Of a stretch of 64,000 bases of DNA, positions 1,378 through 46,646 are shown in pieces. The position numbers and the translations under genes are program-made. The notes below the pieces were generated by a model. It searched no databases, was not told the DNA's origin, and saw only the letters and a list, made by a program, of their open reading frames with translations. Position 1 is the first letter of the stretch; every line of letters begins with the position of its first letter. The stretch lies in the sequence record ON529850.1. One strand, 5' to 3'.

Positions 1378-1434
1378 TCACTCGGAGCTGCGCTCCTCGT
1401 GCCCGGCTCCGCCGGCGGAACCTTCGGTCGGACC
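1378..1434 (+). repeat. tri-hairpin dispersed repeat, copy 1
   Basis: TCACTCG-GAGC(TGC)GCTC-CTCGTG-CCCGGC(TCC)GCCGG-..ACC(TTC)GGT-CGGACC. Confidence 0.9.
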
Positions 1435-1534
1435 ACCGCCACCAGCGTGCTTGACCACCGCCAGGGCGTCATAATGGACCACCGCCTGTAACGACGAAAC
1501 GGACCTATGCCGGGCAGCACCACCGCCTATAGAT

Positions 1535-1577
1535 CGAAACGACCGAAACGCCTCCCCAGGGCGAAACGACCGAAACG
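1535..1577 (+). repeat. 16-bp direct repeat pair CGAAACGACCGAAACG
   Basis: exact copies at 1535..1550 and 1562..1577. Confidence 0.85.
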
Positions 1578-1629
1578 GCCTCCTCTACTTATCTTCACTC
1601 TAATCCGCCTATAGAATGAAGTCCTCAGC

Positions 1630-1734
1630 ATGTCCGGCTATGTCCGGTTTCTCCGCCCGAAACGGTCTAAACGGTTGAAAACGCTAGACCACCGCCCTGA
1701 CGTGCATGTCCATCCGATGTCCGGCTATGTCCGG
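1630..1734 (+). repeat. 18-bp direct repeat pair ATGTCCGGCTATGTCCGG
   Basis: exact copies at 1630..1647 and 1717..1734. Confidence 0.85.
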
Positions 1735-1746
1735 ATTCTTCTGCAA

Positions 1747-1812
1747 TCACTCGGAGCTGCGCTCCTCGTGCCCGCCTCCGGCGGCATCCTTCGGACGGAC
1801 CACTAGCGTGAT
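1747..1812 (+). repeat. tri-hairpin dispersed repeat, copy 2
   Basis: same scaffold; middle stem changed compensatorily to CCGCC(TCC)GGCGG. Confidence 0.9.
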
Positions 1813-1864
1813 CCCTCTCTGCGGGGACGGACCCCTGACACGCAGCGGCAGCGCCACCGTCCTG

Positions 1865-1897
1865 TTGACCCGTCGAAACGATCGTTGTAAAGAAACG
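1865..1897 (+). promoter_or_regulatory. probable promoter with the 12-bp box in flipped orientation
   Basis: TTGACC then TGTAAAGAAACG 15 bp later, upstream of 1925 ORF. Confidence 0.5.
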
Positions 1898-1924
1898 CCA
1901 CCCCAATCGAAAAGGACACCCCGT

Positions 1925-2143
1925 ATGGACGCCCCTCAGTTCCGTCAGCTGTTCCGACAGTTCATCCAGCAAGAGACCCAGCAGGCCGACGCCTCGCTTC
2001 AGATACGCCTGCTTGAGGCGGAGCGGATGATGGGTGAACTGACCGACGCCCAGGTCGAGACGTTCGCGGCGCTGCTGCGCAAGGCGTTCCGGCGTGACTT
2101 CCAGGATGAGCTGCTGGAGATGCAGCCTGGGTATCCGCGCTGA
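1925..2143 (+). CDS. hypothetical protein
   Basis: 72-aa ORF, SD AAGGA. Confidence 0.75.
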   Translation: MDAPQFRQLFRQFIQQETQQADASLQIRLLEAERMMGELTDAQVETFAALLRKAFRRDFQDELLEMQPGYPR

Positions 2144-2169
2144 CGCGGCCGATCTGCCGTAGGGAGGGA

Positions 2170-2242
2170 TTACGCCAGTGATCCGTCCGAAGGACCCTAC
2201 GGCGGAGCCGGACACGAGCGCCGCGCGAAGCGCACGCGAGTG
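2170..2242 (-). repeat. tri-hairpin dispersed repeat, copy 3 (inverted)
   Basis: reverse complement matches the consensus, loops TTC/TCC/TTC. Confidence 0.85.
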
Positions 2243-2468
2243 GTGGATCGGAAGGGAGACATTGCCGGCTGACGCGCAGCGGCATCGCCTCCCCTCTTCT
2301 CTCCAGACGCTGCGGACGAACTGAGCGGGACGCCCGCAGCAGCTTCACCGTATGGGGCGGTGGTGAGTCTGTCAACACTTGCGGTCTGTCCGCTGTCCTG
2401 GGACCGAGGACACCTGTAAACATCGCTTTACACTAATCCGGCATAACGCCACAGGAAGGTGACATTCA

Positions 2469-2508
2469 CTCTAACTCACTCTCCTAGATTCCTTACAAAT
2501 CCCCATAA
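2469..2508 (+). repeat. 40-bp direct repeat, copy 2
   Basis: 33/40 identical to 15..54. Confidence 0.85.
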
Positions 2509-2669
2509 CCCTGTTCGGTGGTTGGTTTCAGACTCCGCCGAAAACGGCTACGCCGGGTCCTCTTCAGGTGGGCGGTGGTGTGTGGTGGCGTTATGGAGTC
2601 AGCGCCCGGCGTCTTGTCGGGGCGTCCTCGCTATGATAGTCGGCATTTCTGACATTCGCGAGGACCCCT

Positions 2670-2813
2670 ATGCCCCAGGCCGACGAACACGACCGCGCTG
2701 ATCCGCAGCCGCCGGAGCGGAAGCATGGCCCACGGTGCTGGGGCAGCACGTCCTTTTCGGACGAGATGGCGTATTGCTATTGCGGCGATGAACCGCCGGC
2801 GGACGAGGCGTAA
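2670..2813 (+). CDS. small hypothetical protein (47 aa)
   Basis: SD GAGGA; TAA overlaps next ATG; below ORF-track cutoff. Confidence 0.6.
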   Translation: MPQADEHDRADPQPPERKHGPRCWGSTSFSDEMAYCYCGDEPPADEA

Positions 2814-3082
2814 TGCAGCCCTTCACCTGCACCGCCCGGATCGCCGTCGAGCCCCACGTCGATCGATCTGCCGTTGAGGCGCTTTACCATCTCAAGGGTG
2901 AGTTGACGGAGCGGCTGGAGAAGGCGGACGCCTACCCGCTCAGCTTCGATGTGACGCTGACCGCGACCACCCGATTCACCGTTTTCGCGGCTACGCCGGA
3001 AGAAGCTGACGTCAAGGCGCTCGCGGTCGCGGAGTCGTTGGGGTTGGGGGCGGTGGTTGAGATCACGCCGGAGCGCGGCTGA
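2813..3082 (+). CDS. small alpha/beta protein, tandem paralog 1
   Basis: coupled ORF; FTVFAATPEEA motif shared with neighbours. Confidence 0.8.
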   Translation: MQPFTCTARIAVEPHVDRSAVEALYHLKGELTERLEKADAYPLSFDVTLTATTRFTVFAATPEEADVKALAVAESLGLGAVVEITPERG

Positions 3083-3086
3083 CGTG

Positions 3087-3350
3087 ATGAAGCACTACAC
3101 CTTCACCGCCCGGATCGGCATCAGTCGGAACCACGACAGCGACACCGCCTGGGCGTGCCTGCATCTGCAAGGCGATGTGGAAAGCCGGATGGAGAAGGCG
3201 CGCGTCGTCGGGGTTGTTCAGGACGTCGCCTTGACGGTGACGATTCGGTTCACCGTCACCGCCCTCACGTTGGCGCGGGCTGAGTTTCAGGCGAACGCTG
3301 TGGCGAAGACTTACGGCCAGGTTCTTTCGATCAAGCGGGAGCGCGTCTGA
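3087..3350 (+). CDS. small alpha/beta protein, tandem paralog 2
   Basis: aligns by eye to 2813..3082 (FTARI..; T.RFTV.A.T). Confidence 0.8.
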   Translation: MKHYTFTARIGISRNHDSDTAWACLHLQGDVESRMEKARVVGVVQDVALTVTIRFTVTALTLARAEFQANAVAKTYGQVLSIKRERV

Positions 3351-3877
3351 TGCGTCAGTTCGACTTCACCCTCTATGTCCGGTTCTCGGGTTGGCAGCGC
3401 TACCCCATGCTTCAGGTCGATCAACTCGAATCGGACCTGCCGCCAGGATTGGAGATGAAGGTCGGTTTGACGCCTGCCTATGCGGTCGCCTGTTCCGTCA
3501 AGGCGCCTTCCTACGCGGAGGCAATCGACCTGGCGGTCGAGACGGCCAAGACGCGCGGGTTCGGGGTGTCGCTGACGCCGGAGCAGGAGGCGGTTTTGCA
3601 CGACCTGGAGAACCACCGCCTGTTCATGGCGCAGCAGGAGCAGGACCCCGCCTGGCGTCGTGAGCAGCGTCGGAACAGGAACGAAGAGCGTCACCGCGCG
3701 ATGTGCGCCGGCGGCGTGATGGAGTCGTTCGGATCGCCGCTGGAGCAGTGGGAGTTCTACGCCACCTACTTCCCCATCTCCGAGATCGCGCTGTCGGAAC
3801 CACCGCCCGAAGACATGAAAATCGTGATCCCGTTCGGGAGCAGCTTGAACGGAATCGCACCACCGCCCTCCAAATGA
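3350..3877 (+). CDS. tandem paralog 3 with C-terminal extension
   Basis: FDFTLYV ... SVKAPSYAEAIDLA. Confidence 0.75.
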   Translation: MRQFDFTLYVRFSGWQRYPMLQVDQLESDLPPGLEMKVGLTPAYAVACSVKAPSYAEAIDLAVETAKTRGFGVSLTPEQEAVLHDLENHRLFMAQQEQDPAWRREQRRNRNEERHRAMCAGGVMESFGSPLEQWEFYATYFPISEIALSEPPPEDMKIVIPFGSSLNGIAPPPSK

Positions 3878-3893
3878 TCCCGTTCGGGATCAC

Positions 3894-3965
3894 TCACTCG
3901 CGCCTTCGGCGCAGCGTTCGTGCCCGGCTGCGCCGGCGCATCCTTCGGACGGATCACTGACGTAA
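3894..3965 (+). repeat. tri-hairpin dispersed repeat, copy 4
   Basis: loops TTC/TGC/TTC; lies between paralogs 3 and 4. Confidence 0.85.
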
Positions 3966-3997
3966 ACCTCCCTGACGGGATCGACGACACGGACCCC

Positions 3998-4225
3998 ATG
4001 CCCCTTCAAGATTTCTGCCTCTACATCGCTTCGCCCGAGACGCCTGAAACGATCGCCCAGGCTCTGTATGGCGTCGGCGCCGATGACTTCTATGTCGATC
4101 CGGCTATGCGAATCGACTTCACCCTGACCGACGAGAGTTTCGAGAAGGCGGTGATCCGGGCGCTCCAGTGGTTGTCGCGCAGCGAGGTCGAGCTGACCAT
4201 TCAGAGCATCATCAACCTGGGCTAG
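3998..4225 (+). CDS. tandem paralog 4
   Basis: DFCLYI..ALYGVGADD..IDFTLTDESFEKAV. Confidence 0.7.
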   Translation: MPLQDFCLYIASPETPETIAQALYGVGADDFYVDPAMRIDFTLTDESFEKAVIRALQWLSRSEVELTIQSIINLG

Positions 4226-4228
4226 GGC

Positions 4229-4480
4229 ATGCGGCTTCAGTTCATTCGCCTTTACGTCGAGACGCCCGCGTCGGAGCTGTCGCTCTTCAACTGCTTGAAG
4301 GCGGCCGGCGGCTACGACGGAACGATCACGCGCTATCGCGGTGGTCTCTACATCAACGCCAGGGTGTTGGGGGAGACCGTCGCCGATGCCGTCTCGGCGT
4401 TGCGGCGCGCGCTTGAGCAGAGCACCATCCCGATGGAGTTCATCGCCGACCTGACCCCGCCACGCGAAACGCCCCTTTAA
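4229..4480 (+). CDS. tandem paralog 5
   Basis: FIRLYV..LKAAGGYDG..VLGETVADAV. Confidence 0.7.
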   Translation: MRLQFIRLYVETPASELSLFNCLKAAGGYDGTITRYRGGLYINARVLGETVADAVSALRRALEQSTIPMEFIADLTPPRETPL

Positions 4481-4564
4481 GCGCTGCGCGCGGGTCCTCC
4501 CGGTCAGGGGCGGTGGTGACGCGGAGGTGTAATTCTGACATTGAATTCCGCTTTGACGTAATGC

Positions 4565-4593
4565 TTGACGTTCGGCGATGGTTCGCATATACA
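4565..4593 (+). promoter_or_regulatory. sigma70-like promoter
   Basis: TTGACG-N17-TATACA. Confidence 0.7.
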
Positions 4594-4599
4594 GATCAG

Positions 4600-4790
4600 G
4601 TCATGGGCTGCTACACGATCTCCCCTTGGGAAGTGCAAAAGAGCGGTCCTTCGATGCAGTATCTCGGGGAGAGAGACGGTTGTAAGAGCTCCCCGCCCAC
4701 CCTCTCCTTGGATGGGGGTCCACGCGTTATGCGGGATAGTCGAAAGACAAAGTGGGTATCGTGCGAGGGGCGGCTACGGCTGCCCCTTTT
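4600..4790 (+). ncRNA. candidate ~190-nt structured RNA or attenuator leader
   Basis: promoter upstream; closing helix CACGAT/ATCGTG; GTC-GAAA-GAC hairpin; terminator GGGGCGGC-TACG-GCTGCCCC-TTTT. Confidence 0.55.
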
Positions 4791-4816
4791 CGCATCCACG
4801 GGACGGACCTACCTCC

Positions 4817-5014
4817 ATGTCGACCCATTTCATGCTCCCGCTGGAAGATCGCCTTGAAACACGCGATCGCGCCGCTGCGCTCCTGGAACGGCATCGCCCC
4901 GAGATCGGCAAGCTGCTGGCGGACGTCCAGGCGTTCGCACAAGACATTCAGTGCGCCCTGGCGGACATCCCGAACGACCGGCTGCGGAATATCGCCTTGT
5001 GTTGCGATCGTTGA
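4817..5014 (+). CDS. hypothetical protein
   Basis: 65-aa helical ORF; weak SD. Confidence 0.6.
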   Translation: MSTHFMLPLEDRLETRDRAAALLERHRPEIGKLLADVQAFAQDIQCALADIPNDRLRNIALCCDR

Positions 5015-5045
5015 CAACTGACGTGGATTGCGTCATCAACGCCGC

Positions 5046-5228
5046 ATGACCTACAAGCAGAAACTTCTCGTTAGCGCCCTGCTCTATCTTACGGCCGCCG
5101 GCCTGTTCGGCAGCGGCCTCGGCTACACGTTCGCCAACGGAGAGGATCGCATCAGCCTGGCGATTCTGATCGCCGCCCTGGGGGTGCTGCTGACCGCGCG
5201 TCATCTGCGTCTGCGGTGGAAGCTGTGA
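5046..5228 (+). CDS. small membrane protein
   Basis: two hydrophobic segments; coupled. Confidence 0.75.
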   Translation: MTYKQKLLVSALLYLTAAGLFGSGLGYTFANGEDRISLAILIAALGVLLTARHLRLRWKL

Positions 5229-5407
5229 AGACGAAGACCGACAAGATCATCATCTGCACCGCCCTCTTCCTGGGACTTTCCGGCGTTATTATGGGCGCGG
5301 TTGACCTGGCGCGGACCGGCGACGTGAGTTGGCAAGCTCTGGTGATTCAGTTCAGCTGGCTCGCCGTCCTGGTCGGCTACAGTCTGATTCGATTGAAGCG
5401 CGCGTGA
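5225..5407 (+). CDS. small membrane protein
   Basis: GTGA overlap; two TM segments. Confidence 0.75.
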   Translation: MKTKTDKIIICTALFLGLSGVIMGAVDLARTGDVSWQALVIQFSWLAVLVGYSLIRLKRA

Positions 5408-5637
5408 TGGTCCCGGAGTGGATCACCGTCGTCTATCTGGTCGGCGCCGGCCTGACGATGCTCTTCATCTGGGCGCAGAACTTCTACACCGGATCGCGCG
5501 ACTCCGGCCTGATGATAGGCTTCTGGTGGTTCGCTATTCTGCTGGCGGTCCTCATCTATTGGGCCGCCCGTTGGCTTCGTCAACAACTCGACAACGCGCC
5601 TATGGCGGAGACCATGACATGCACCCGCTCGAACTGA
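5407..5637 (+). CDS. small membrane protein
   Basis: TGATG overlap; two TM segments. Confidence 0.75.
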   Translation: MVPEWITVVYLVGAGLTMLFIWAQNFYTGSRDSGLMIGFWWFAILLAVLIYWAARWLRQQLDNAPMAETMTCTRSN

Positions 5638-5867
5638 CCCTCCTCTGGTTGCAGCTGGCGTTCGGCGCCTCCAGCGCCGGTCTCGTCTTCCTGGCGGTGG
5701 CGCTCTATCTGCCGAAGAGCAACCGGTGGGGCAACCGCGCCGCCCTGGCGTGGGTCGGTTCCAATCTCCTGGTGCTGATGTGTCTCGTCTGCGCCGTCCA
5801 TGCGGCCTATCTGCCGGGCGGCTACGCCGAAATCCTGACGGCGCTGCAACGTGAGGGGCTCGTCTGA
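5619..5867 (+). CDS. small membrane protein
   Basis: two TM segments. Confidence 0.75.
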   Translation: MHPLELTLLWLQLAFGASSAGLVFLAVALYLPKSNRWGNRAALAWVGSNLLVLMCLVCAVHAAYLPGGYAEILTALQREGLV

Positions 5868-6070
5868 TGGCGACCGCTCTCGTCGACACCGCCTTCACCT
5901 TCCTCTGCGTCGCCCTGGGGGCGGTCACAGTTTTGATTTTCCTGCACCGGGCGAATCGGGGTGGGGTCAGCAACCGCGCCGTCCTGTGGTCGGTCTCTCT
6001 GGGTTGCACCGCCATTGGCGCCATCTATTTCATCGGCGCTATGGTCGTGCTGTGGCAGGGGCTCCCCTGA
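5867..6070 (+). CDS. small membrane protein
   Basis: TGATG overlap; two TM segments. Confidence 0.75.
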   Translation: MATALVDTAFTFLCVALGAVTVLIFLHRANRGGVSNRAVLWSVSLGCTAIGAIYFIGAMVVLWQGLP

Positions 6071-6261
6071 TGGCTCCGCTTGAAGAACTGCTGTGGATCG
6101 TCTGCGGCTATTTCGGTCTTGCGGCGCTGCTCATGACTTACCGCCTGACGCGCCGGCCTAAGGGGCAGGTCATGGCGCTGGCGGATTTGGTCGCCGCATT
6201 TTCGGTCATTATCGGCGCCGTCTATCTGGTGGGCGCGATGATCACGCTGCATTTCGGATAA
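6070..6261 (+). CDS. small membrane protein
   Basis: TGATG overlap; two TM segments. Confidence 0.75.
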   Translation: MAPLEELLWIVCGYFGLAALLMTYRLTRRPKGQVMALADLVAAFSVIIGAVYLVGAMITLHFG

Positions 6262-6305
6262 GGCGTCGGGTCTCCTCGGAGGCCGGGCCGGAATAGGTTA
6301 GACAC

Positions 6306-6527
6306 ATGTGGAAGACTGTAACCGACGACGAGAAGCCCGTTCTGGTGGATCGATTGATCTCTCGCGAAGCGTGGGATGCGGGTTCATCGCTGCACGTCGC
6401 GGAAGTTCATGTCGTTGATGTCGACGGGACCGTCTACCGATATTTCCGCGCTCTTTCCGACCTTACCGGGGTGTCGGTTAAAGACGAGATCGAACGCTGG
6501 GACGGTGTCCCTTTCTCCTGCCCATGA
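6306..6527 (+). CDS. hypothetical protein
   Basis: 73-aa ORF ending at terminator. Confidence 0.7.
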   Translation: MWKTVTDDEKPVLVDRLISREAWDAGSSLHVAEVHVVDVDGTVYRYFRALSDLTGVSVKDEIERWDGVPFSCP

Positions 6528-6558
6528 AAAAGGCCGCCCTGGTCGGGGCGGCCTTTCT
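6527..6558. terminator. bidirectional intrinsic terminator
   Basis: AAAAGGCCGCCC-TGGTC-GGGGCGGCCTTTCT between convergent genes. Confidence 0.8.
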
Positions 6559-6564
6559 GATTCT

Positions 6565-6738
6565 TCAGCGGTTGTGCTGGTCGATCCGCTCCTGGGTCCA
6601 GTAGCGGGGCAGGAACGCCAGCGGGATCAGGATGGCGGCGAACACGATGCCGACCAGGATCAGATCGCCCGTGCCGTCATAGACCTTCGGGGCGGGCGGC
6701 GCGACGCCGACGACGGCGGTGGTTTTGGTGGGCTGCAT
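6565..6738 (-). CDS. small single-TM protein (57 aa)
   Basis: hand-translated MQPTKTTAVV...LILVGIVFAAILIPLAFL. Confidence 0.65.
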   Translation of the reverse strand: MQPTKTTAVVGVAPPAPKVYDGTGDLILVGIVFAAILIPLAFLPRYWTQERIDQHNR

Positions 6739-6747
6739 GGGACTTCC

Positions 6748-7071
6748 TTAGTTGTTGAGCGGGGGCATGGGATAGCCGCCCGGCGTCGCAATGGCGCACG
6801 ACACGCCGTAGCCGTTCGCCTTGGCGGTGGCGGTGACGAACTCACGCCCGTTGACACGCAGCACGCCGAATTCACACGGACCTTGCGTGGTCAGGCGCTG
6901 ATACGCCCAGGCGTAGCTGGGGGTCGGCGCCGCCTGGGTGGTGATGGGGACTTCGACCGACGCCGGTTGAAGGCCGGCCTGACGCGCCCGGTCCCATTCG
7001 CCGGCGGTGGAGGGTTGGCAACCGGCGACCAGAATCGCGAGGCAGGCGGCGTAGAAGGGGGTGTGTTTCAA
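6748..7071 (-). CDS. putative lipoprotein
   Basis: TTG start with SD GGAGG; lipobox ILVAGC. Confidence 0.7.
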   Translation of the reverse strand: MKHTPFYAACLAILVAGCQPSTAGEWDRARQAGLQPASVEVPITTQAAPTPSYAWAYQRLTTQGPCEFGVLRVNGREFVTATAKANGYGVSCAIATPGGYPMPPLNN

Positions 7072-7663: not shown

Positions 7664-7674
7664 GTCTTCCTCCG

Positions 7675-8082: not shown

Positions 8083-8109
8083 TGTAAAGAAACGCCGAAA
8101 GCACGTCAA
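8083..8109 (-). promoter_or_regulatory. boxed phage promoter
   Basis: TTGACG-N9-CGTTTCTTTACA. Confidence 0.75.
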
Positions 8110-8175
8110 GCGGGAATGTTGCGCGGCGTCGGAAATCGCGGCAATCAGCGACAGCTTTCTATGCTGAGGGGAATC

Positions 8176-8688: not shown

Positions 8689-8693
8689 GGGTT

Positions 8694-8760
8694 TCGCTCG
8701 CGGCTTCGCGCTCGCGACCGGCTGCGCCGGCCGGACCTGCGGTCGGATCACTGACGTAAT
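8694..8760 (+). repeat. tri-hairpin dispersed repeat, copy 5
   Basis: flanks changed compensatorily (CGCTCG/CTCGCG); loops TTC/TGC/TGC. Confidence 0.8.
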
Positions 8761-8797
8761 CGGCGTTGCGGACCACCACCGTGCGCGCGAAACGCCG

Positions 8798-12524: not shown

Positions 12525-12561
12525 CCGTAAAAAGCCTTTCCTGTGTTGAGCTTGAGGATGT

Positions 12562-12587
12562 TGTAAAGGAATGGAGGAGGCTGTCAA
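12562..12587 (-). promoter_or_regulatory. boxed phage promoter
   Basis: TTGACA-N8-CATTCCTTTACA. Confidence 0.75.
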
Positions 12588-12862
12588 CCCCGGCGTGCGA
12601 TTTCTCGCCCACTGACGACCTGAACGGCGCCGCAGGTGCAGTGGGTCGCCTGGATACGCGCATGTTTCGCCTGATGATGCCGGCGCAAGGCGTCGCCGCC
12701 ATAGATGGACAGGCCGACGATCCCCAGGATGACGCAGGGCAGCATGCCGCCGAACGGCCCGAGGTGCTTGCCGGCCTCGAACGACGCCCAGGCGATCAGT
12801 GGGAAGATGACCATGATGGCGGAGGCGAGGAGAAGGCCGGGGCGGGCTTCTTTAGGCAGCAT
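12584..12862 (-). CDS. membrane protein with C-terminal CxC
   Basis: two TM segments. Confidence 0.7.
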   Translation of the reverse strand: MLPKEARPGLLLASAIMVIFPLIAWASFEAGKHLGPFGGMLPCVILGIVGLSIYGGDALRRHHQAKHARIQATHCTCGAVQVVSGREIARRG

Positions 12863-17273: not shown

Positions 17274-17302
17274 GGCGGTCCTCCGTGTTGCGTCTTCGCG
17301 GT

Positions 17303-17328
17303 TGTAAAGGAACGAAAGCGCATGTCAA
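17303..17328 (-). promoter_or_regulatory. boxed phage promoter
   Basis: TTGACA-N8-CGTTCCTTTACA. Confidence 0.8.
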
Positions 17329-17382
17329 CCGGAAAATGACCGGCATTGATTGACAAGAAATCAGGCGATGGTAGAGACGATT

Positions 17383-17880
17383 ATGGCTATTGAAACCGAA
17401 CGACGCTTTCTTCTGACCGCCGCGCCGCCGCAGAGCGAGCTTCGCTCCGCCACAGTGCACCGGATCGACCAACGCTACCTCCACAATACAGGTGGATGGG
17501 CGATGCGAACACGCAAGACCACCTACCCGAACGGGTCCGTCTACCGACAGCTGACGCTGAAGCGACCGACCGGTGAAGTTGGATCGGCCGTCGAAATCGA
17601 GACGGTGATCAAGCCGGAGGTCTATGAAGAGCTGATCGCGGAAGCGGGGCTGCCGATCATCAAGAATCGGTTCCGCATCTCCAAGGGACCGCACACCTGG
17701 GAAGTCGATCAGTTCCTGAACAAGGACCTGGCCCCGTTGTGGATCGCCGAAGTCGAAGTGCGTTTTATGGCGGATCAGTTCGTCATCCCCGCGTGGGTGA
17801 ACGGCCCGGAAATCACGGGCGATCACCTTTATTCCAACGTCAACCTGGCGGCCCGGCTGACCACCGACGCGGTGATCTAA
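17383..17880 (+). CDS. CYTH domain protein
   Basis: IETERRF; IDQRYL; LTLK; EIE; WEVDQF; IAEVE; EITGD..YSN..L. Confidence 0.9.
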   Translation: MAIETERRFLLTAAPPQSELRSATVHRIDQRYLHNTGGWAMRTRKTTYPNGSVYRQLTLKRPTGEVGSAVEIETVIKPEVYEELIAEAGLPIIKNRFRISKGPHTWEVDQFLNKDLAPLWIAEVEVRFMADQFVIPAWVNGPEITGDHLYSNVNLAARLTTDAVI

Positions 17881-17886
17881 GGGCCA

Positions 17887-17944
17887 TCACTCGGAGCTGC
17901 GCTCCTCGTGCCCGGCTCCGCCGGCGGCACCTTCGGTCGGACCC
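17887..17944 (+). repeat. tri-hairpin dispersed repeat, copy 6
   Basis: near-identical to copy 1. Confidence 0.9.
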
Positions 17945-17975
17945 CTGACCGGAACAGCGTTTCGGATGAAAAGAC

Positions 17976-25271: not shown

Positions 25272-25299
25272 GAGCGTCCTCCGTGTTGTTCACGGGTGT

Positions 25300-25325
25300 T
25301 GTAAAGGAACGCTATCCGCTGTCAA
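25300..25325 (-). promoter_or_regulatory. boxed phage promoter
   Basis: TTGACA-N8-CGTTCCTTTACA. Confidence 0.8.
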
Positions 25326-25328
25326 CCC

Positions 25329-32937: not shown

Positions 32938-32941
32938 CCTA

Positions 32942-33005
32942 TCACTCGCTTGCGCTTCGCGCGGCGCTCGTGCCCGGCTTCGCCGGCCGCACCTTCGGTC
33001 GGACC
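32942..33005 (+). repeat. tri-hairpin dispersed repeat, copy 7
   Basis: starts 4 bp after tRNA CCA; loops TTC/TTC/TTC. Confidence 0.9.
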
Positions 33006-33138
33006 CCATGGAGGGACGGCCGAGACGACGTCTCGATCGGTTTAGAGAACCGACGAACTGTCAAGTTTAACTTGACAATTCCGACGATAGTTAAACCGCG
33101 ATAATTTGTGCTTGACCGTCGCATTTCGTTCCTATACA

Positions 33139-41004: not shown

Positions 41005-41035
41005 GTGGGGTCCCCCTCGTTGCTGTCAGCGGTGT

Positions 41036-41062
41036 TGTAAAGAAACGAAGTAGCGCTGTCAA
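41036..41062 (-). promoter_or_regulatory. boxed phage promoter
   Basis: TTGACA-N9-CGTTTCTTTACA. Confidence 0.8.
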
Positions 41063-41066
41063 CGCT

Positions 41067-41366
41067 TCATCGCGCCCTTAGATACGCTTCAGGGAAGTCG
41101 GGGTATTCGCCTTCCATGCGTGTGATGCGCCGGGCTCGCAGCTCCTGCACCATCTGAAGCGCACCTCGCTGGTGCGCGGCGATGAATTCCTTGTCGAACA
41201 GGCGGCGGTGTTTCACGTAGTCGATGAATGCGACCTGTTTGCGCGCCTGGGCGGAATCCCAACCGCAACACCAGTCGAACGACGAATCGTGAGGGCAGGC
41301 GGTCCGGGGCTCTCCCCGACGAAACGCCGCCACCCCTTCAGCGAATCGCTCCTCAACCAACCCCAT
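41067..41366 (-). CDS. Rmf-like (ribosome modulation factor motif) protein
   Basis: FAEGVAAFRRG..ACPH..W..GW pattern. Confidence 0.55.
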   Translation of the reverse strand: MGLVEERFAEGVAAFRRGEPRTACPHDSSFDWCCGWDSAQARKQVAFIDYVKHRRLFDKEFIAAHQRGALQMVQELRARRITRMEGEYPDFPEAYLRAR

Positions 41367-41587
41367 TACAGGCGCGTCCAGAAGGGGACGCGACGGGTGC
41401 CGACCGCCGAGATGTCGTCGAGCCGGATGTAGAGGGGCACGCCGCGCGCGCCGTCCCATTTCAACCCCGACAGGTTGTTGTCGCCGCTGGATGTCGCGGT
41501 GATGTCGCTGGCGAAAAAGCGGATCACGGCGCCGCTCTTCATGAGCAGGCGCACCTCCAGCTTGCGAAAACGGAACTTCCGTTTCAT
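41366..41587 (-). CDS. hypothetical protein
   Basis: coupled. Confidence 0.7.
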   Translation of the reverse strand: MKRKFRFRKLEVRLLMKSGAVIRFFASDITATSSGDNNLSGLKWDGARGVPLYIRLDDISAVGTRRVPFWTRL

Positions 41588-41676
41588 GCGCGCGCCCTCG
41601 CCGCCTTACGACGATCAATGAGGCCGGTGATGAAGCCGGCGGCGCCGCCGAGGATCAAGCCGAGATAGGGGAACCA
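41584..41676 (-). CDS. 30-aa single-TM peptide
   Basis: hand-translated; ATGA overlap. Confidence 0.55.
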   Translation of the reverse strand, partial: WFPYLGLILGGAAGFITGLIDRRKAARARA

Positions 41677-41800
41677 TTCATAGTGCATTGACAACCTCCC
41701 TGAAAAACACCCCCTGCCTAAGAAAGGCGCGGAGTGTTGTCAACCTCGACATTCGCTCTTTCTGTGTCAGAATAGTCGGCGAATGTTGGAGCCCCTACGC

Positions 41801-42268
41801 ATGGAACGCCTGCTTGTTGTGGATTTTTGCGTCAGAGTCGTCATCGACGACGAAGGCTTGGCTGAGGGGGAGCGACGCATTGCGGCGGCCTTGGAAACGG
41901 AAGCGGAGCTGACGCTGGACGGCGCCGTCGCGCGCCTGGCCCATGCCTATCCCTGGGCGACGGCCGCATTGGAAGAGTGGGTGGAGCGTAACAGGGCCTT
42001 CACCGCAAGGGCGTTGGAGCGGCGTCCGTGGGAGGAGGGGCTCCATGTCACCGCCGTCGTCTATGACCGATGCTTCGCCGGCGGCTACGGCCTGGACGCG
42101 ACGCAGGACGGGACCGACGTCTATTCTCACCTGGACCCGATCGAAACCCCGCTGATGACGATCCACTACCTGTTCGAGCAGTCCGCGCAGGAACATCGGA
42201 CGCTGGCGGAGTTTGTCGTGAACGCCATGAATGACGCCTGGCGCAAAGAAAACGGCCCGGCCTGGTGA
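41801..42268 (+). CDS. hypothetical protein
   Basis: SD GGAG. Confidence 0.7.
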   Translation: MERLLVVDFCVRVVIDDEGLAEGERRIAAALETEAELTLDGAVARLAHAYPWATAALEEWVERNRAFTARALERRPWEEGLHVTAVVYDRCFAGGYGLDATQDGTDVYSHLDPIETPLMTIHYLFEQSAQEHRTLAEFVVNAMNDAWRKENGPAW

Positions 42269-42301
42269 GGCCGGGCCGCGTAAAGCGCGCCGTGACGGTG
42301 T

Positions 42302-42682
42302 TTAGGCGGAAACCGTTCTCGCCGCGTAGTTCGGGTCGATGCGACGCAGCGCCTTCGACACCGCCGCCCGCGAGACGCCGTAGCGTTCCGCCAGAGAGGC
42401 CAGGCTGTGACGGCCGGTCTTGTAGAGCTTCGCCGCCTCCGCGTGATCGAACTTCGGCGGGTTGCCGCCCGTTTCCTTCAGCAGGGTTGGCGCCTTGCGC
42501 TCGACTTCGGCGCGGATCAGGGAGCCGCTGACGCCGTACATCGCGCCGACTTCCGCCAGGGTGTAGTTGCCCGAGCCATAGGTGCGGACCGCTTCTTCGC
42601 GGTCGAACGCCACACGCGGCGCCCACGGCATCTTCGCGCGTTGTTTGCGGGGCTTGCGTTCGGTGTTGGCGGTCTTGGTCAT
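42302..42682 (-). CDS. tandem HTH DNA-binding protein
   Basis: YTLAEVGAMYGVSGSLI; HSLASLAERYGVSRAAV. Confidence 0.85.
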   Translation of the reverse strand: MTKTANTERKPRKQRAKMPWAPRVAFDREEAVRTYGSGNYTLAEVGAMYGVSGSLIRAEVERKAPTLLKETGGNPPKFDHAEAAKLYKTGRHSLASLAERYGVSRAAVSKALRRIDPNYAARTVSA

Positions 42683-42744
42683 CGCGTGTCCTCCAGAAGT
42701 GAATGTAGGGGAGATGTAGCGCGGCGATCTGAAGATGTCAACTA

Positions 42745-43644
42745 CTATTTTTCAAAATAATTCGACGTTGACTCGGACCACAACAGGCTGATCGCATAGG
42801 GATCGCCGGACGCCTCGTAAGCGCCCAGGATTTGCGCCCGCCCCGTATCCAGCAAGCGACGGACGACGTGGATGTCGACCGACCACGCTTCCGGCGTAAG
42901 GGCTCCGTCGGCGTCAGTGCTGGTCGCTATGATGGTGCCAACCGTCCAACGGCCGCCCTTGGTTTTATAGAGGGCGTCTTCGTTCTCGGGCCGGCGCATG
43001 ATCGCAATCGTCTCTTCAGCGACCATTTCCATACGCCGCGCGTTTTCGGCTTCTTGAGCCGCCCGCTCAGCTTCACGCCTCAAGGCATCGTGGCGCCTCA
43101 CCTCCGACTTGGCCGCATTGAGCATGTCTTTCTCCGAGACGAAGGGACCGTCCCAGAGGACGTCGCCGCTTGTTAGGGAAACGTGCCTGAGGACCGACTC
43201 CAGGCTGCGGTCGTCTGCCACCAGGACGTCGACGTTTTTCAGGAAAGCGTGCCCATAGACACGGCGAATCGAGAAAATCGTTTCGTTCTTCCCCTGGATC
43301 AGGTGCGAGAATCTCCGGTGAACGGCCGCCTTTTCTTCCGGCGACCCTTCCAGGGGAAGGCCGGGGAGGAGGATGGTGGGCAGGGCCACCGTCCTAAAGT
43401 CCAGGCTCGCCGTCCAGAACCATCCACGTCGCCAGAAGAAGCCCTCACCAGGGACAACTGGGCCGTTTTCTTCCTGGAGGGTCGGCCAAGATGCGACGAC
43501 CGAGGTGGTCATAGAAGAGCGGCCGTCCCCCTTCGCCGTCCAGCTTGCCCAGATTCGGGCTTCCTCTTCGTTCGAAGCCTGGACCAAGACACGCTCTTGA
43601 ACCGTCCGCGTCACGAGGATGCTGTAGTTTTTCTGTTCAGTCAT
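42745..43644 (-). CDS. hypothetical protein, DpnD/PcfM-like N-terminus
   Basis: SD AAGGAGG; VLVQASNEEEAR. Confidence 0.75.
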   Translation of the reverse strand: MTEQKNYSILVTRTVQERVLVQASNEEEARIWASWTAKGDGRSSMTTSVVASWPTLQEENGPVVPGEGFFWRRGWFWTASLDFRTVALPTILLPGLPLEGSPEEKAAVHRRFSHLIQGKNETIFSIRRVYGHAFLKNVDVLVADDRSLESVLRHVSLTSGDVLWDGPFVSEKDMLNAAKSEVRRHDALRREAERAAQEAENARRMEMVAEETIAIMRRPENEDALYKTKGGRWTVGTIIATSTDADGALTPEAWSVDIHVVRRLLDTGRAQILGAYEASGDPYAISLLWSESTSNYFEK

Positions 43645-43876
43645 GTTCGCTCCTCCTTTTCGTTCGGCGTCTCTCGGTCCATTCCGGATTCCACGCCTTC
43701 GCCGTCTTTCGCGCCAACTCTGGGTCCCAAGCCCGAACCGCACCGCGAATCGTGGTTTGCTCATAGCCGTAGATGCGGCCGAGTTCACTGTAGGTCGCCC
43801 CGTCCCGCCGCGCTTGCAGGAGCTGCGCCCGCTGGATGTCGGTCAACGCCGCCAGGGTCGGGGCGTATTTACCCAC
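43637..43876 (-). CDS. HTH DNA-binding protein
   Basis: GATYSELGRIYGYEQTTIRGAV. Confidence 0.75.
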   Translation of the reverse strand: MGKYAPTLAALTDIQRAQLLQARRDGATYSELGRIYGYEQTTIRGAVRAWDPELARKTAKAWNPEWTERRRTKRRSEHD

Positions 43877-44057
43877 GACCGGTCTTGATCCACGCGCTGA
43901 TGCGGTCTCGACTGCCGAACAGAAGGGTGGACAAGGTGCGTTCGGCCGCGACGAGAACCTGGGCGTTCTCCAGCGACGGGTCTGCGTCGAACTTGCGCTT
44001 GGCCTGGTCATAGGCGGCGTTCGCGTGTGGGATCGCGCGGAAGGCTTGCGTCGTCAT
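43869..44057 (-). CDS. hypothetical protein
   Basis: ATGA overlap. Confidence 0.7.
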   Translation of the reverse strand: MTTQAFRAIPHANAAYDQAKRKFDADPSLENAQVLVAAERTLSTLLFGSRDRISAWIKTGRG

Positions 44058-44212
44058 CCTGCGCTCACCGCTGCGAGGAAGTGGCGTTGGGTTTGCTCCA
44101 ACCACCGCTCGAAAGGATGGTGTTCGGAGCGCACGCCGGCGCGCGGTTCCGCCTGATCGAACAAGGCTTCAGCAGCGCGGATTTGTTCAGGCGTGGGCGT
44201 CGGTCCGCTCAT
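44054..44212 (-). CDS. small hypothetical protein (52 aa)
   Basis: hand-translated; coupled both ends. Confidence 0.65.
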   Translation of the reverse strand: MSGPTPTPEQIRAAEALFDQAEPRAGVRSEHHPFERWLEQTQRHFLAAVSAG

Positions 44213-44457
44213 TTCAGAGCCGCCTTAGCCCGCACCTTGCTGTCGTCCGCCAGGGTATAGGCGGCGACGACGCCCTGCCCGCGCGGGGTTGCGATGTCGA
44301 AGCCCTTGTTGCGCAGTTTCGACAGGATCACCTTGAAGCTGGCGTCGTTTTCGGTGACGCCTTCCATCAGGCCGGCCTTGTCGAGGGGCTTCTTCGCCTT
44401 CACCAGGCGCGACAGGATGATTTGTTCGCTGGGGGTCAGCGTCGGGGTTTGGGTCAT
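44209..44457 (-). CDS. winged-helix DNA-binding protein
   Basis: SFKVILSKLRNKGFDI..G..YTL. Confidence 0.8.
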   Translation of the reverse strand: MTQTPTLTPSEQIILSRLVKAKKPLDKAGLMEGVTENDASFKVILSKLRNKGFDIATPRGQGVVAAYTLADDSKVRAKAALK

Positions 44458-44458
44458 G

Positions 44459-44779
44459 TCAGATCACCAGAATTCGGTTGAAGTCGAAGATGTCGTAGAG
44501 GTCGTTCAGGATGTTCTTCACCTCGTCCGGATCGTCCTCGGCGTCGTGGCAATAGTCGATGAAGTCCTCCAGCAGATCGACCAGGGCAAGATCGTGCGCC
44601 ACGTCCTTCTTGTGGATGAAGTCGTGCAGGCGCGGCGCCACCGCATTGATGATGCGCTTGACGTCACCCACGACAAGTTCGTCGAGATTTTTCAACTGAT
44701 CCACGAGGTCACGCAGGCGGATAGAATAGCGCCAGCGGTGGCCGTGTTCCTGAATTCCGGCGAGGGCGGCAGGGTGCAT
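44459..44779 (-). CDS. hypothetical protein
   Basis: acidic C-terminus. Confidence 0.75.
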   Translation of the reverse strand: MHPAALAGIQEHGHRWRYSIRLRDLVDQLKNLDELVVGDVKRIINAVAPRLHDFIHKKDVAHDLALVDLLEDFIDYCHDAEDDPDEVKNILNDLYDIFDFNRILVI

Positions 44780-44788
44780 GGTGCGTTC

Positions 44789-45025
44789 CTAGAGGGTTTG
44801 CAGACGATCGCCAGGGCGGAGCCGGCGCATCTGACGCGGTTCATAGCAGACCACCGACATACCGTTATGGAAGAAGTCGGTATCGAAACCGCAGCCTCGC
44901 ACCTCCACTTTGCCGATGTAGCCGTAATACTTGGCGTGGGGGTCGCAGACGACCACGAAATCGCCGTCGTGATAGGCCCCCGGCTCGGTGGCGCTGATGG
45001 GGTAGGAGGTGAACTCCTGACTCAT
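44789..45025 (-). CDS. small beta-rich protein (KOW/SH3-like?)
   Basis: GDFVVV..G..GKV. Confidence 0.7.
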   Translation of the reverse strand: MSQEFTSYPISATEPGAYHDGDFVVVCDPHAKYYGYIGKVEVRGCGFDTDFFHNGMSVVCYEPRQMRRLRPGDRLQTL

Positions 45026-45354
45026 TTGATGCTCTCCCTGAACGCCGCCCAGTCTTTTATCCCAGCCTCTGTGACCTCACGACCCTGGTAGCCCAGACGC
45101 GCCTTCAGGCGAGAACTGGAGAACCGACTGATACGCCCGACCGGGACAACCGCCCGTCCAAGTCGGGACGGGTCAAGGATTTTTCCATAGCCGGTGTGAT
45201 CCAGCGGGTCATGCCCGTGCCACAGGCCGGTGAACAGCTTGAGACCGGGCGTTCGGGTGTTCAGGCCGGCGCGGACCTCGCGCCCCTTCACCACCAAGCC
45301 CACCCAAAGCCGATTGCGGGAGTCGCCTCGCAGGCGGTAGAGAACGGCCGACAT
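45022..45354 (-). CDS. hypothetical protein
   Basis: TGATG overlap. Confidence 0.7.
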   Translation of the reverse strand: MSAVLYRLRGDSRNRLWVGLVVKGREVRAGLNTRTPGLKLFTGLWHGHDPLDHTGYGKILDPSRLGRAVVPVGRISRFSSSRLKARLGYQGREVTEAGIKDWAAFRESIK

Positions 45355-45698
45355 CAGCACACCGTCCCGTTGGGGATACCCTGGATGTGCAGAGGCTCCT
45401 GGGTGTCGAGAAGGCGCAGGGCTCCGCCGTGGGCGTCTCGTTCCGGTGCGTAGCCGGCGTCCTCCAGCAGCTCTTCACACCGCAGCAGCATCTGCGCGAT
45501 CGTGTCGCTGTCATCACCCAGCTTCGAAATCCAGCTGACGACCACCGAACCCTCATCGACGCCCTTACGCACGCGAAAGCCCGAAGCGACGTTCAGAAAG
45601 CCGCGCACTTTCGCCGGCTTCATCGTCGAGCGTTTCAGACCACCGCGCGACAACACGGCGCCGACGGCCTGGGTGGTAAAGCTGAGTCTACGGGTCAA
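45354..45698 (-). CDS. hypothetical protein
   Basis: TTG start, SD AAGGAGG. Confidence 0.75.
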   Translation of the reverse strand: MTRRLSFTTQAVGAVLSRGGLKRSTMKPAKVRGFLNVASGFRVRKGVDEGSVVVSWISKLGDDSDTIAQMLLRCEELLEDAGYAPERDAHGGALRLLDTQEPLHIQGIPNGTVC

Positions 45699-45727
45699 TG
45701 CGGTCCTCCTTGTGTTGAGTGACGGTG

Positions 45728-45754
45728 TGTAAAGAAACGAAAACCGTGTGTCAA
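45728..45754 (-). promoter_or_regulatory. boxed phage promoter
   Basis: TTGACA-N9-CGTTTCTTTACA. Confidence 0.8.
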
Positions 45755-45757
45755 CGC

Positions 45758-46057
45758 TTAAATATACACCGACGCTTCGAGGCCCGCGTCCTGGTTCAGG
45801 GCCGCTTCGGCGTTACGCTGGGCATCCGCGCGGAACTGGTCGCGATCCTCTTGCGTGACCAGTGGCATGGGGATGGGTCCGCCTTGCACTACAAGGCCGC
45901 CGCGCTCGGCGAGCTTTAGGCAGGTTTCAGGCGTGCTGAACCACGACACATGCGGCTGCGCCTTCCCTGGAAACAGGGTGCTTTCGCTCACCAGTCGGAA
46001 CCGATGGGGCGGGTATGCCCAGCCCGACGGAGCTTTTTCGATCCAGGCGCGACGCAT
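45758..46057 (-). CDS. hypothetical protein
   Basis: TGATG overlap. Confidence 0.7.
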   Translation of the reverse strand: MRRAWIEKAPSGWAYPPHRFRLVSESTLFPGKAQPHVSWFSTPETCLKLAERGGLVVQGGPIPMPLVTQEDRDQFRADAQRNAEAALNQDAGLEASVYI

Positions 46058-46524
46058 CAGGCGTTCTGCGATTTGGGCCAGCGCTTACGCACGCCGGCGG
46101 CGATCTGACGCCCGCGTTCCGTGAGGGCGTAAGACGGGAAGGGGGCGATCAGCCCCAGACGGACCAGGTGAGTCAGGACCGATTGCAGCTGGATGATGTC
46201 GCTGGGCAACGGACGATCTTCGTCAAGGCGCAGCAAGGTGCGACGGTCTTCCTTGTCCAGCATGGTGTAGATGGATTGGCGATCGGCGGGGTCCAGCGCA
46301 TCCGTCTCGATCAGGGTGGGGTCGGTGCGCAGCGCTAGGGTCTCCAGACCCCGCGACATCTCGTAGATCACCGATTCGGCGCTGTGCCGATCCATCGAGC
46401 GCACGGCGCCGATCAGGCGGTTGGCGATCTCCAGCGCCAACCAGGCGGAGATCGCAAGCGGTGAATCGCTCGGTTCGGCCGAAAGCAGGTCGTCGAAAGC
46501 GCTGTCCAGGGGAATGTCGGTCAT
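46057..46524 (-). CDS. hypothetical protein with C-terminal wHTH
   Basis: SD AAGGAGG; LTHLVRLGLI..YALTERG. Confidence 0.75.
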   Translation of the reverse strand: MTDIPLDSAFDDLLSAEPSDSPLAISAWLALEIANRLIGAVRSMDRHSAESVIYEMSRGLETLALRTDPTLIETDALDPADRQSIYTMLDKEDRRTLLRLDEDRPLPSDIIQLQSVLTHLVRLGLIAPFPSYALTERGRQIAAGVRKRWPKSQNA

Positions 46525-46552
46525 GTGGCCCTCCTTTTCTGTCAATCGACTC

Positions 46553-46579
46553 TGTAAAGGAATGGAAGACCACCGTCAA
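46553..46579 (-). promoter_or_regulatory. boxed phage promoter
   Basis: TTGACG-N9-CATTCCTTTACA. Confidence 0.75.
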
Positions 46580-46583
46580 CGCT

Positions 46584-46646
46584 TCACTCGCTGGGCTTCG
46601 CCTGCGCTCGTGCCCGGCTCCGCCGGCGGCACCTCCGGTCGGTCCA
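46584..46646 (+). repeat. tri-hairpin dispersed repeat, copy 8
   Basis: loops TTC/TCC/TCC; abuts a minus-strand -35. Confidence 0.9.

Follow-up and report, generated by a model that had tools for sequence, protein, structure and literature searches.

The first 64,000 bases of the genome of Brevundimonas phage vB_BpoS-Gurke (the window, identical to bases 1-64000 of record ON529850.1) carry eight copies of an element of about 65 nucleotides made of three short hairpins, which we call the tri-hairpin element. Gurke, with 321,510 bp and 63% G+C, belongs to the Dolichocephalovirinae, the phiCbK-like jumbo siphophages. The three-hairpin structure is real and under selection, its orientation is tied to the DNA strand independently of gene direction, and it is coupled to the Chi octamer of the host, an association that is new here. 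Judging from these features, the element most likely acts as folded single-stranded DNA, and we tentatively consider for it a priming role of the kind played by single-strand initiation (ssi) signals.

The scaffold reads (A/T)T-CAC-TC-(variable hairpin 1)-TC-GTG, N, CCGGC-TNC-GCCGG, a linker of 2-4 nucleotides, NCC-TNC-GGN and CGGAYCAC, and matches the three-hairpin arrangement described in a previous reading made from the letters alone (the sequence-only reading). We call the strand written here the top strand and its complement the bottom strand. Stems are short, 3-6 bp, and hairpin 1 ranges from a short form to several longer ones that contain a bulge or wobble. Scanning the whole Gurke genome with a covariance model trained on 20 copies yielded exactly 11 copies (E<=4e-10, the next match having E=0.4), ten of them on the + strand. 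The eight window copies were all retrieved by this model, by a repeat finder (seven direct copies and one inverted) and by a scan for the 20-nucleotide core CTCGYGNCCGSCTNCGSCGG with at most one mismatch (8 occurrences versus 0.03 expected from shuffles). Three further copies, at 69.6, 87.8 and 121.5 kb, extend the tri-hairpin domain to 1.4-121.6 kb; there is no copy beyond 122 kb.

Pairing, loops, motifs and stability were evaluated over 36 distinct copies of the family. Standard pairs fill 97% of the 468 stem cells, compensatory changes affect seven of the 13 stem pairs (31 cells), and not one of these stem cells shows a one-sided change from G-C to G-U. None of 500 shuffles reaches the observed pairing or covariation, and slid partners pair in at most 47% of cases. 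Hairpin 2 loops read TCC in 19 copies, TGCC in 7, TGC in 5, TTC in 3 and TGAC in 2, while hairpin 3 loops read TTC in 23, TCC in 12 and TGC in one; every loop of the family is T...C on the top strand, without exception. The sequence-only reading held that loops vary at the middle base only. This is true of all 24 window loops, each of which is TGC, TTC or TCC, but not of the family, where nine of 36 copies have a four-base loop in hairpin 2. The TC/TC mismatch at the base of hairpin 1, also noted at that stage, is kept in 35 of 36 copies.

Comparison with Kikimora, a close relative with about 93% genome identity whose first 50 kb we examined, gives the same picture. All eight window copies have orthologs there, seven of them on the + strand. 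Five of them (310 nucleotides) differ at three positions only, all in a loop middle or linker; such near-invariance, against a genome-wide divergence of about 7%, argues for selection on the structure. Copy 8 shows several differences, including one compensatory change from G-C to C-G. At copies 2 and 3 the entire hairpin 1 is switched between short and long type (the copy 2 site has the long type in Kikimora), which points to exchange between copies. We rejected coding constraint on the minus strand as a cause of this pattern: the variable positions, at the middle of loops, are not codon third positions.

Other material compared included pieces of the Colossus, CcrPW, Domovoi, Kabachok and Papperlapapp genomes. 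Using blastn and pattern scans together with the model, we found family members in Domovoi, Marchewka, Bambus, Kabachok and Papperlapapp, in the Caulobacter phages CcrColossus (6 copies) and CcrPW (5 copies, orthologous to five of those in Colossus), in four IMG/VR contigs of 32-40 kb and in five metagenome contigs. A copy next to tRNA-Arg keeps its position in Kikimora and Domovoi; in Kabachok, a cassette made of a promoter and an open reading frame (ORF) is inserted between the tRNA and the element. The phiCbK-type and Bertelyvirus genomes had no match to either of our two search patterns, a plasmid search returned no element, and an overly degenerate pattern run against genome contigs gave only chance singletons in unrelated high-GC genomes. 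Rfam at gathering threshold recognized only the tRNA-Arg in the window and, up to E=5 on both strands of 1200-4100, nothing matching the element. The phiCbK genome paper has no description of it (PMC3556154).

Could the element be a selfish repeat of the repetitive extragenic palindromic (REP) or miniature inverted-repeat transposable element type, once spread by an HUH-type transposase into the lagging-strand template and now largely functionless? Several features would fit: the element is multi-copy, palindromic and about 65 nucleotides long; like insertions of the IS200/IS605 type, it is polar relative to a replication-linked marker; certain copies extend into ORF 3' ends; hairpin 1 types were exchanged at orthologous Gurke and Kikimora sites; and it occurs in unrelated genome types. 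However, the orthology of all eight window copies in Kikimora and of five copies between Colossus and CcrPW, the retention of the tRNA-Arg copy across distant Brevundimonas phages and a conservation far above the genome background speak against it. There is no GTAG head and no target duplication, we saw no transposase among the proteins scanned (a part of the total), and just two of 11 indel breakpoints between Gurke and Kikimora touch an element. REP-like mobilization, put forward in the sequence-only reading, thus appears distinctly improbable. The same breakpoint count led us to discard a role as gene-cassette boundary, similar to an integron attC site or to the stem-loop cassettes of T4-type phages (PeSL). 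Neither do the copies carry the GTTRRRY cores of attC sites, and the sole recombinase found is a catalytic domain of 226 residues.

Orientation provides the next line of evidence. The element lies on the + strand in 10 of 11 cases in Gurke and 2 of 2 in Papperlapapp, and on the - strand in 6 of 6 cases in Colossus and 5 of 5 in CcrPW, whose records are written the opposite way round to Gurke. In every genome, the stretch that holds the copies has the primase-polymerase gene on one side and the terminase genes on the other, and their top strand is antiparallel to the primase gene. Gene direction does not follow this rule: the Gurke copies at 69.6 and 87.8 kb are on the + strand among minus genes, one of the two + copies of Papperlapapp sits between minus genes, and the six Colossus copies comprise two in sense and three in antisense orientation, plus one in a divergent gap. 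Of the antisense ones in Colossus, two are inside the last 60 nucleotides of an ORF, in translationally coupled operons where the end of the element forms the GTGATG stop/start overlap with the next gene; the third is 90 nucleotides from a separately predicted terminator. ORF-embedded antisense copies were seen in GURKE_01600 (L002, 19571-19921) and in Colossus gp291 (L248) and gp390 (L250). The last 20-30 residues of these three proteins are encoded by the element, and in Colossus the terminal GTGAT yields the TGA/ATG overlap.

This distribution bears on the possibility of a structured RNA acting in either orientation, be it a terminator or insulator devoid of U-tract, a 3'-end stabilizer or a binding site for a regulator. 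At least seven sense copies (copies 4 to 7, the 121.5 kb copy, Colossus copies 1 and 5, and that of Domovoi) lie 5-17 nucleotides past a stop codon or tRNA 3' end, the cassette inserted in Kabachok ends exactly at the element, several copies are just upstream of the -35 box of the next promoter, as in a terminator-promoter cassette, and hairpin 1 has T.G wobbles on the top strand. The 5-17 nucleotide spacing is nevertheless little informative, because intergenic spacers are so short that the element is itself the spacer and any insert of 65 nucleotides would be forced against its neighbors. No T-run follows the element on either strand, and an RNA would have no U-run in either orientation, whereas canonical terminators with a hairpin and T-run are used elsewhere in Gurke, and the one found 90 nucleotides beyond a Colossus copy is of this separate kind. 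Antisense copies number three of six in Colossus and at least two in Gurke, and two of them lie in coding 3' ends of coupled genes. Core stems show no wobble intermediates, no Rfam family corresponds, and a role that is free of orientation would leave the 10/11, 6/6 and 5/5 polarity and the co-orientation with Chi unexplained. The element is most likely not an ordinary RNA terminator, and we regard a structured RNA of any of these sorts as unlikely.

The Caulobacter Chi site, 5'-GCGGTGGT-3', attenuates AddAB in vivo; it is read on 3'-ended single-stranded DNA, shows enrichment in the lagging-strand template and is recognized with a probability of about 0.23 per site (PMC5443536). We assumed the same sequence for Brevundimonas. 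The GACCACCGCC boxes flanking the elements are its reverse complement. Six such octamers (GCGGTGGT on the minus strand, GACCACCGCC boxes on the plus strand) surround copies 1 and 2 at 1353-1695; we had considered these 'iterons' (1352-1696) as initiator sites and now reread them as an array of host Chi octamers. The window holds 21 octamers versus 3.4 expected, a six-fold excess, and its first 8 kb account for 16 of these. An unbiased survey of every 7-mer showed the Chi core ACCACCG/CGGTGGT to be the most strand-polar of the Gurke genome (p=5e-17), with a strand ratio of 60:15 over 0.56-117.5 kb and 10:75 in the remainder. One switch in polarity, located between 320.5 and 0.56 kb, is sharp; the other, at 107-140 kb, where the primase gene lies, is diffuse. 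The first arm (0.56-117.5 kb) coincides with the tri-hairpin domain.

The coupling is also local. For seven of the 11 Gurke elements there is a co-oriented Chi core no more than 60 nucleotides away, compared with 0.91 expected (0 of 20,000 permutations, P<5e-5), four elements have a full octamer nearby (P=3.5e-4), and none of the 11 has an anti-oriented core within that distance. The only inverted element, copy 3 (2178-2246), stands beside three inverted octamers at 2357, 2572 and 3050. Chi is found on the same strand as the hairpins with GNA loops, that is, the bottom strand, usually 3' of them and 8-56 nucleotides away. A Chi box also precedes the element in small contigs and in L193.

Individual copies illustrate these features. 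Copy 1 (1375-1436, + strand, 78.9 bits with the covariance model) has the short hairpin 1 and lies inside the Chi array, between Chi complements at 1353 and 1432. It is the only Gurke copy lying by an AT-rich patch (1305-1345, immediately to the left of the array), in which we read a putative sigma-70-like leftward promoter for GURKE_00010, TTGACC-N16-TAAAAT; the 'iterons' at that place are the Chi sites. Copy 2 (1744-1803, +, with a 3' extension to about 1830 and a Chi complement at 1688) and copy 5 (8691-8751, +, 6 nucleotides past the GURKE_00220 stop, Chi core at 8775) contain the stem swaps quoted in the sequence-only reading, CCGCC/GGCGG in hairpin 2 and CGC/GCG at the base of hairpin 1, respectively, and both are real. 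Copy 3 (2157-2246 on the - strand, including an extension module at 2157-2177) has its outer end (2152/2157) at the exact insertion point of an extra gene in Kikimora. Copy 4 (3887-3957, +, extension module to about 3985, Chi complement at 3859) shows the TTCGTG deviation as noted and is directly preceded by a GATCCCGTTCGGGATC hairpin at 3876-3891. There is overlap between it and the doubtful GTG at which GURKE_00070 is annotated to start, so that the description of all eight copies as intergenic depends on annotation. Copy 6 (17884-17945, +, Chi core at 17860) begins 7 nucleotides past the GURKE_00420 stop and copy 7 (32939-33007, +) 5 nucleotides past tRNA-Arg. Copy 8 (46581-46647, +, Chi core at 46569) occupies a divergent intergenic region, where its 5' end adjoins the -35 box (GTCAAC) of a leftward promoter-like motif.

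Additional repeats accompany some copies. A second module of about 28 nucleotides, GGAYCACTGRCGTAATCCCTCCCTRCGG (AGGGAGGG on the other strand), follows several of them, at 1804-1830, 2157-2177, 3958-3985 and 8752-8775, and is doubled after Kikimora copy 3 (L171, about 2414-2453). In Kabachok and Domovoi, the GATCCCGTTCGGGATC hairpin reappears inside 59-nucleotide tandem repeats that lie downstream of the tRNA-Arg copy (L221 2560-2760, L220 2560-2680). In the spacer between copies 1 and 2, CGAAACGACCGAAACG and ATGTCCGGCTATGTCCGG each occur twice as short direct repeats, at 1535-1585, 1631-1648 and 1717-1734. A 40-nucleotide direct repeat with 83% identity, CTCTAACTCACTCT...TTCCTTACAAA...CCCATAA, is present at 15-54 and 2469-2508 and encloses a region with the Chi array, gene 00010 and tri-hairpin copies 1 to 3.

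Which strand is likely to fold? On the bottom strand, the 36 copies contain 57 GCGNAGC, 13 GCGNNAGC and 44 CCGNAGG motifs, all with the C-G closing pair and the G...A loop of 3-4 nucleotides that characterize DNA mini-hairpins, and the hairpin 1 base offers tandem G.A pairs. Motifs of this class are known at the complementary-strand origin of G4, in RSF1010 ssiA (CCGAAGG) and in N4 promoters (GCGGAGC) (PMC13037366), and bind the single-stranded DNA-binding protein (SSB) poorly while strongly resisting nucleases (Hirao review, PMC13037366). The bottom strand is predicted to be the more stable in 32 of 36 copies with DNA parameters and in 29 of 36 with RNA parameters, special loop bonuses being left out in both. 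Since Chi acts on a 3'-ended single strand and marks the lagging-strand template, the bottom strand would be expected to be single-stranded in both processes. Wobble pairs give mixed evidence and were dropped as a guide to the folded strand: the top strand has T.G in distal hairpin 1, T.C (G.A on the bottom) in other variants and, beside hairpin 3, A.C in copies 2 and 4, where the bottom strand has G.T. The folded-DNA signal proposed in the sequence-only reading is strengthened by the fixed DNA-strand orientation, the lack of wobble intermediates, the mini-hairpin motifs and the position of Chi, and predicted stability makes the bottom strand the better candidate.

The same hairpins raise the question of an N4-type promoter, in which a phage RNA polymerase would read the template strand. 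Bottom-strand hairpin 2, with its 5-bp stem and GGA, GCA or GAA loop including GCGGAGC, does resemble N4 promoters (PMC13037366), and 27 of 36 copies have the form CCGGC-GNA-GCCGG. Hairpins of this type can be extruded from supercoiled DNA (PMC13037366). A + gene stands to the right of eight of 11 Gurke copies, but in Colossus only three of the six have a co-directional gene ahead of them, and several copies are inside operons. The three largest candidate proteins, in a search that was not exhaustive, showed no match resembling a virion RNA polymerase. We know of no such polymerase in the phiCbK-like subfamily. With no polymerase among the proteins tested and inconsistent downstream gene direction, this suggestion of the sequence-only reading has very little left to recommend it and is, to our minds, scarcely credible.

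A candidate reader of the element emerged from small replicons. Three related integrase-bearing contigs encode a primase-helicase of 1026 residues with a DUF5906 domain and matches to DNA-primase PHROGs. In all three, the tri-hairpin lies 300 nucleotides downstream of the primase-helicase gene and directly adjoins an AT-rich region with iterons, both direct and inverted, on its flanks, and a second copy in the same orientation is found upstream of the operon. Iterons differ from contig to contig (GTGTCCA, GTCCCGAC, GATGTCCA), whereas tri-hairpin and Chi box are conserved. The iteron and AT-rich region has the makings of an origin, and we infer that it serves as one. Gurke protein GURKE_02780 shares phrog_10537 with the small-contig primase (31% identity over 555 residues, E=5e-62), a similarity taking in the GLDxD motif and a Cys/His cluster, and would be the candidate reader of the element on this sequence basis. 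Annotated as hypothetical, it has 1202 residues of primase-polymerase/helicase-like character and is encoded at 134.7-138.3 kb (L003, 34675-38283), 13 kb from the nearest copy. The sequence-only reading recognized no cognate enzyme in the window; this primase-polymerase lies outside it and, like the Chi link, the copies beyond the window and those in relatives, goes beyond that reading. A primase homologue exists in all Dolichocephalovirinae. Two related ideas were abandoned: that of an origin beside the Gurke primase gene, where there are no iterons or AT-rich region and only an ordinary terminator hairpin, and that of an exclusive co-occurrence of element and primase-polymerase, as phiCbK-type phages have the protein and no canonical element. 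Another protein, GURKE_04560 (L006, 28831-29745), is annotated as 'DNA primase' and is an ArdC-N plus zincin-peptidase protein.

Next to GURKE_02780 is an 'integrase', GURKE_02790 (L003, 38393-39073), that consists of the 226-residue catalytic domain of a tyrosine recombinase with no N-terminal domain. The elements might be its target, or the sites of strand-specific nicks by an HNH nuclease, as in the interruptions of T5. T5-type nicks are all on one strand, as are the copies here, and the phage encodes HNH nucleases in addition to the recombinase. Nothing links these enzymes to the element, however, recombination between direct repeats would delete DNA, and covarying hairpins are no known requirement for nicking. 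We therefore consider a nickase or recombinase site very unlikely.

A priming role may be pictured as follows. The element would work once its bottom strand (the minus strand for + copies) becomes single-stranded, and this strand would fold into three compact mini-hairpins with GNA or GNNA loops and tandem G.A pairs at the base of hairpin 1. By the usual rules of Chi, the Chi-bearing bottom strand would be the lagging-strand template and also the 3'-ended strand that host AddAB spares after Chi recognition. Folded hairpins may resist coating by SSB and mark a start site for complementary-strand synthesis by a primase, either phage GURKE_02780 or host DnaG. The element would then be an ssi signal for lagging-strand or recombination-dependent replication of one genome arm. 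Folding as DNA and not RNA, activity of the bottom strand and priming as output are all steps that we infer, and an ssi-type role for this strand-specific, Chi-coupled signal has, in our estimate, somewhat less than an even chance of being correct.

Several observations weigh against it. Copies occur in just one of the two Chi-polarity arms and are spaced irregularly, with five inside 9 kb and intervals of 9-34 kb thereafter, a pattern unexpected for a general lagging-strand device. The two copies flanking the operon of small contigs have the same orientation, which misfits simple leading-strand priming in both directions, and L228, a small-element relative with 60% identity, has no element near its primase gene. 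The phiCbK-type and Bertelyvirus genomes possess the primase homologue while matching neither search pattern. As to the strand, the T.G wobbles in the distal part of long hairpin 1 are A.C mismatches on the bottom, and GC/AT skew makes the + (top) strand look the more exposed over 1-105 kb. GC skew, a weak guide that contradicts Chi polarity, was not retained to deduce fork direction.

Bottom-strand hairpins might instead serve the AddAB/Chi reaction and have no part in priming. Once AddAB had entered the linear phage DNA and met Chi, the first DNA that it spared on the 3' strand would be a tri-hairpin, which would stop 3' exonucleases or shape the loading of RecA and SSB, so that the genome arm entering first is protected or sent into recombination. 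This would be consistent with the location of Chi on the same strand, mostly 3' of the hairpins, at distances of 8-56 nucleotides, with the co-oriented blocks of 16 octamers and five elements in the first 8 kb, and with the restriction of elements to one Chi arm. Mini-hairpins are resistant to exonucleases and bind SSB poorly (PMC13037366), and the low recognition of single Chi sites (about 0.23, PMC5443536) makes arrays or helpers useful. Synteny with Colossus, whose ends are mapped (PMC3556154), suggests that the element arm is terminase-proximal and would be packaged last and injected first. However, four of 11 copies lack a Chi core within 60 nucleotides, about 50 of the 60 Chi sites in the arm have no tri-hairpin, by analogy with Colossus the first Chi in the correct orientation would leave some 24 kb, terminase genes included, on its outer side, and the Chi sequence used for Brevundimonas is that of Caulobacter, by assumption. 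Nor do we know of an earlier case in which Chi has a hairpin partner. We deem this explanation doubtful. It is equally only possible, and we would not put it higher, that tri-hairpin and Chi form one module of Caulobacterales phages and small mobile replicons which exploits attack by AddAB: Chi would switch AddAB off, and the adjacent hairpins on the spared 3' strand would both cap it against exonucleases and offer a start site for recombination-dependent DNA synthesis.

Three further features of the Gurke genome were noted in passing. A recurrent promoter-like motif, TTGAC-N(10-12)-CGTT(T/C)CTTTACA, occurs about 30 nucleotides upstream of many start codons and reads TGTAAAG(A/G)AA(C/T)G...GTCAAC on the minus strand. 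Its sites are 8083-8112, 12556-12590, 17297-17331, 25294-25328, 41036-41069, 45728-45761, 46553-46586, 52096-52125, 52662-52695, 60936-60969 and 63525-63558, and its -10-like box is shared by the small integrase-bearing contigs. From 276 to 300 kb, and on to about 313 kb (L006, 26000-50000), some 20 regular intergenic cassettes separate small minus-strand genes, each with a GC hairpin and short T-run, GTTAAGGTTAAC boxes, a promoter-like block TTGACAC...CTAGA and a AACGGAGACACCC ribosome site. Finally, an 8-kb stretch with no annotated gene adjoins the DNA polymerase gene at 172.4-180.2 kb (L004, 22373-30194).

Should the priming role hold, the tri-hairpin would be the first reported case, in a jumbo double-stranded DNA phage, of a hairpin signal that is both multi-copy and genome-polar, and the first structured element physically coupled to Chi sites. 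It would offer testable handles on phiCbK-like replication (origin, fork direction and priming) and would bear on how a linear genome of 320 kb survives host AddAB. A module of hairpins and Chi would amount to a structured cis-acting partner, undescribed for any Chi system. In any case, Gurke shows that a phage genome can have a six-fold excess of the Caulobacter Chi octamer with sharp strand polarity, the polarity switches predict the position of its ends or origin, and the element and its covariance model can be used as a marker for a set of uncultivated integrative replicons.

How does the element compare with described systems? With REPs, their mosaic elements (BIMEs) and the PeSL cassettes of T4-type phages, it shares multiple intergenic palindromes at gene ends, some beside promoters, with exchange between copies. 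It differs from them in its (A/T)TCACTCG head in place of GTAG, in a uniform strand polarity that contrasts with the paired, inverted REPs and in its stable orthologous positions; no gene for a REP-associated tyrosine transposase was seen among the part of the proteins scanned, and most gene indels between Gurke and Kikimora lie away from the element. N4 promoters are similar in their 5-bp stem, three-nucleotide GGA or GAA loop and GCGGAGC mini-hairpin on one strand, yet they have a single hairpin where the element has three, together with an inconsistent downstream gene orientation and no cognate polymerase in the three proteins tested. Like Chi, the element is strand-specific and polar along the genome, and it is co-oriented with and adjacent to Chi; however, Chi is an unstructured stretch of 8 nucleotides, and the tri-hairpin is a separate, structured unit of 65 nucleotides found at about one-sixth of the Chi cores of the arm.

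The closest parallels may be with single-strand origins. The ssi signals of G4 (ori_c) and RSF1010 are hairpins of one strand, active only when single-stranded and in one orientation; the element is likewise strand-polar, and its activity would be of the same kind. G4 ori_c comprises three adjacent hairpins, as does the element, and the CCGAAGG mini-hairpin of RSF1010 ssiA is identical to bottom-strand hairpin 3. In RSF1010, ssiA and ssiB lie beside an iteron origin, and RepB', a primase of archaeo-eukaryotic type, initiates within a GTG located 3' of the hairpin (PMC13037366, PMC8567376); the inverted pair formed by copies 2 and 3 recalls ssiA and ssiB. There is no sequence homology with ssiA, which is one hairpin of 21 nucleotides compared with three of 3-6 bp, the 11 copies dispersed in a 321-kb double-stranded DNA phage contrast with the one or two at the origin of ssi replicons, and the element is linked to Chi, unlike the signals of G4 and RSF1010. 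The pRN1 origin differs in having a single stem-loop of 100 nucleotides and no iterons, while small contigs have a second copy upstream of the operon. However, the position of the small-contig element with its iteron and AT-rich region, about 300 nucleotides downstream of a primase-helicase gene, is that of the pRN1 origin, and similar layouts were noted in phages in the pRN1 study (PMC4234260). With an element beside iterons and downstream of a primase-helicase, the small contigs thus resemble both pRN1 (PMC4234260) and RSF1010 (PMC8567376).

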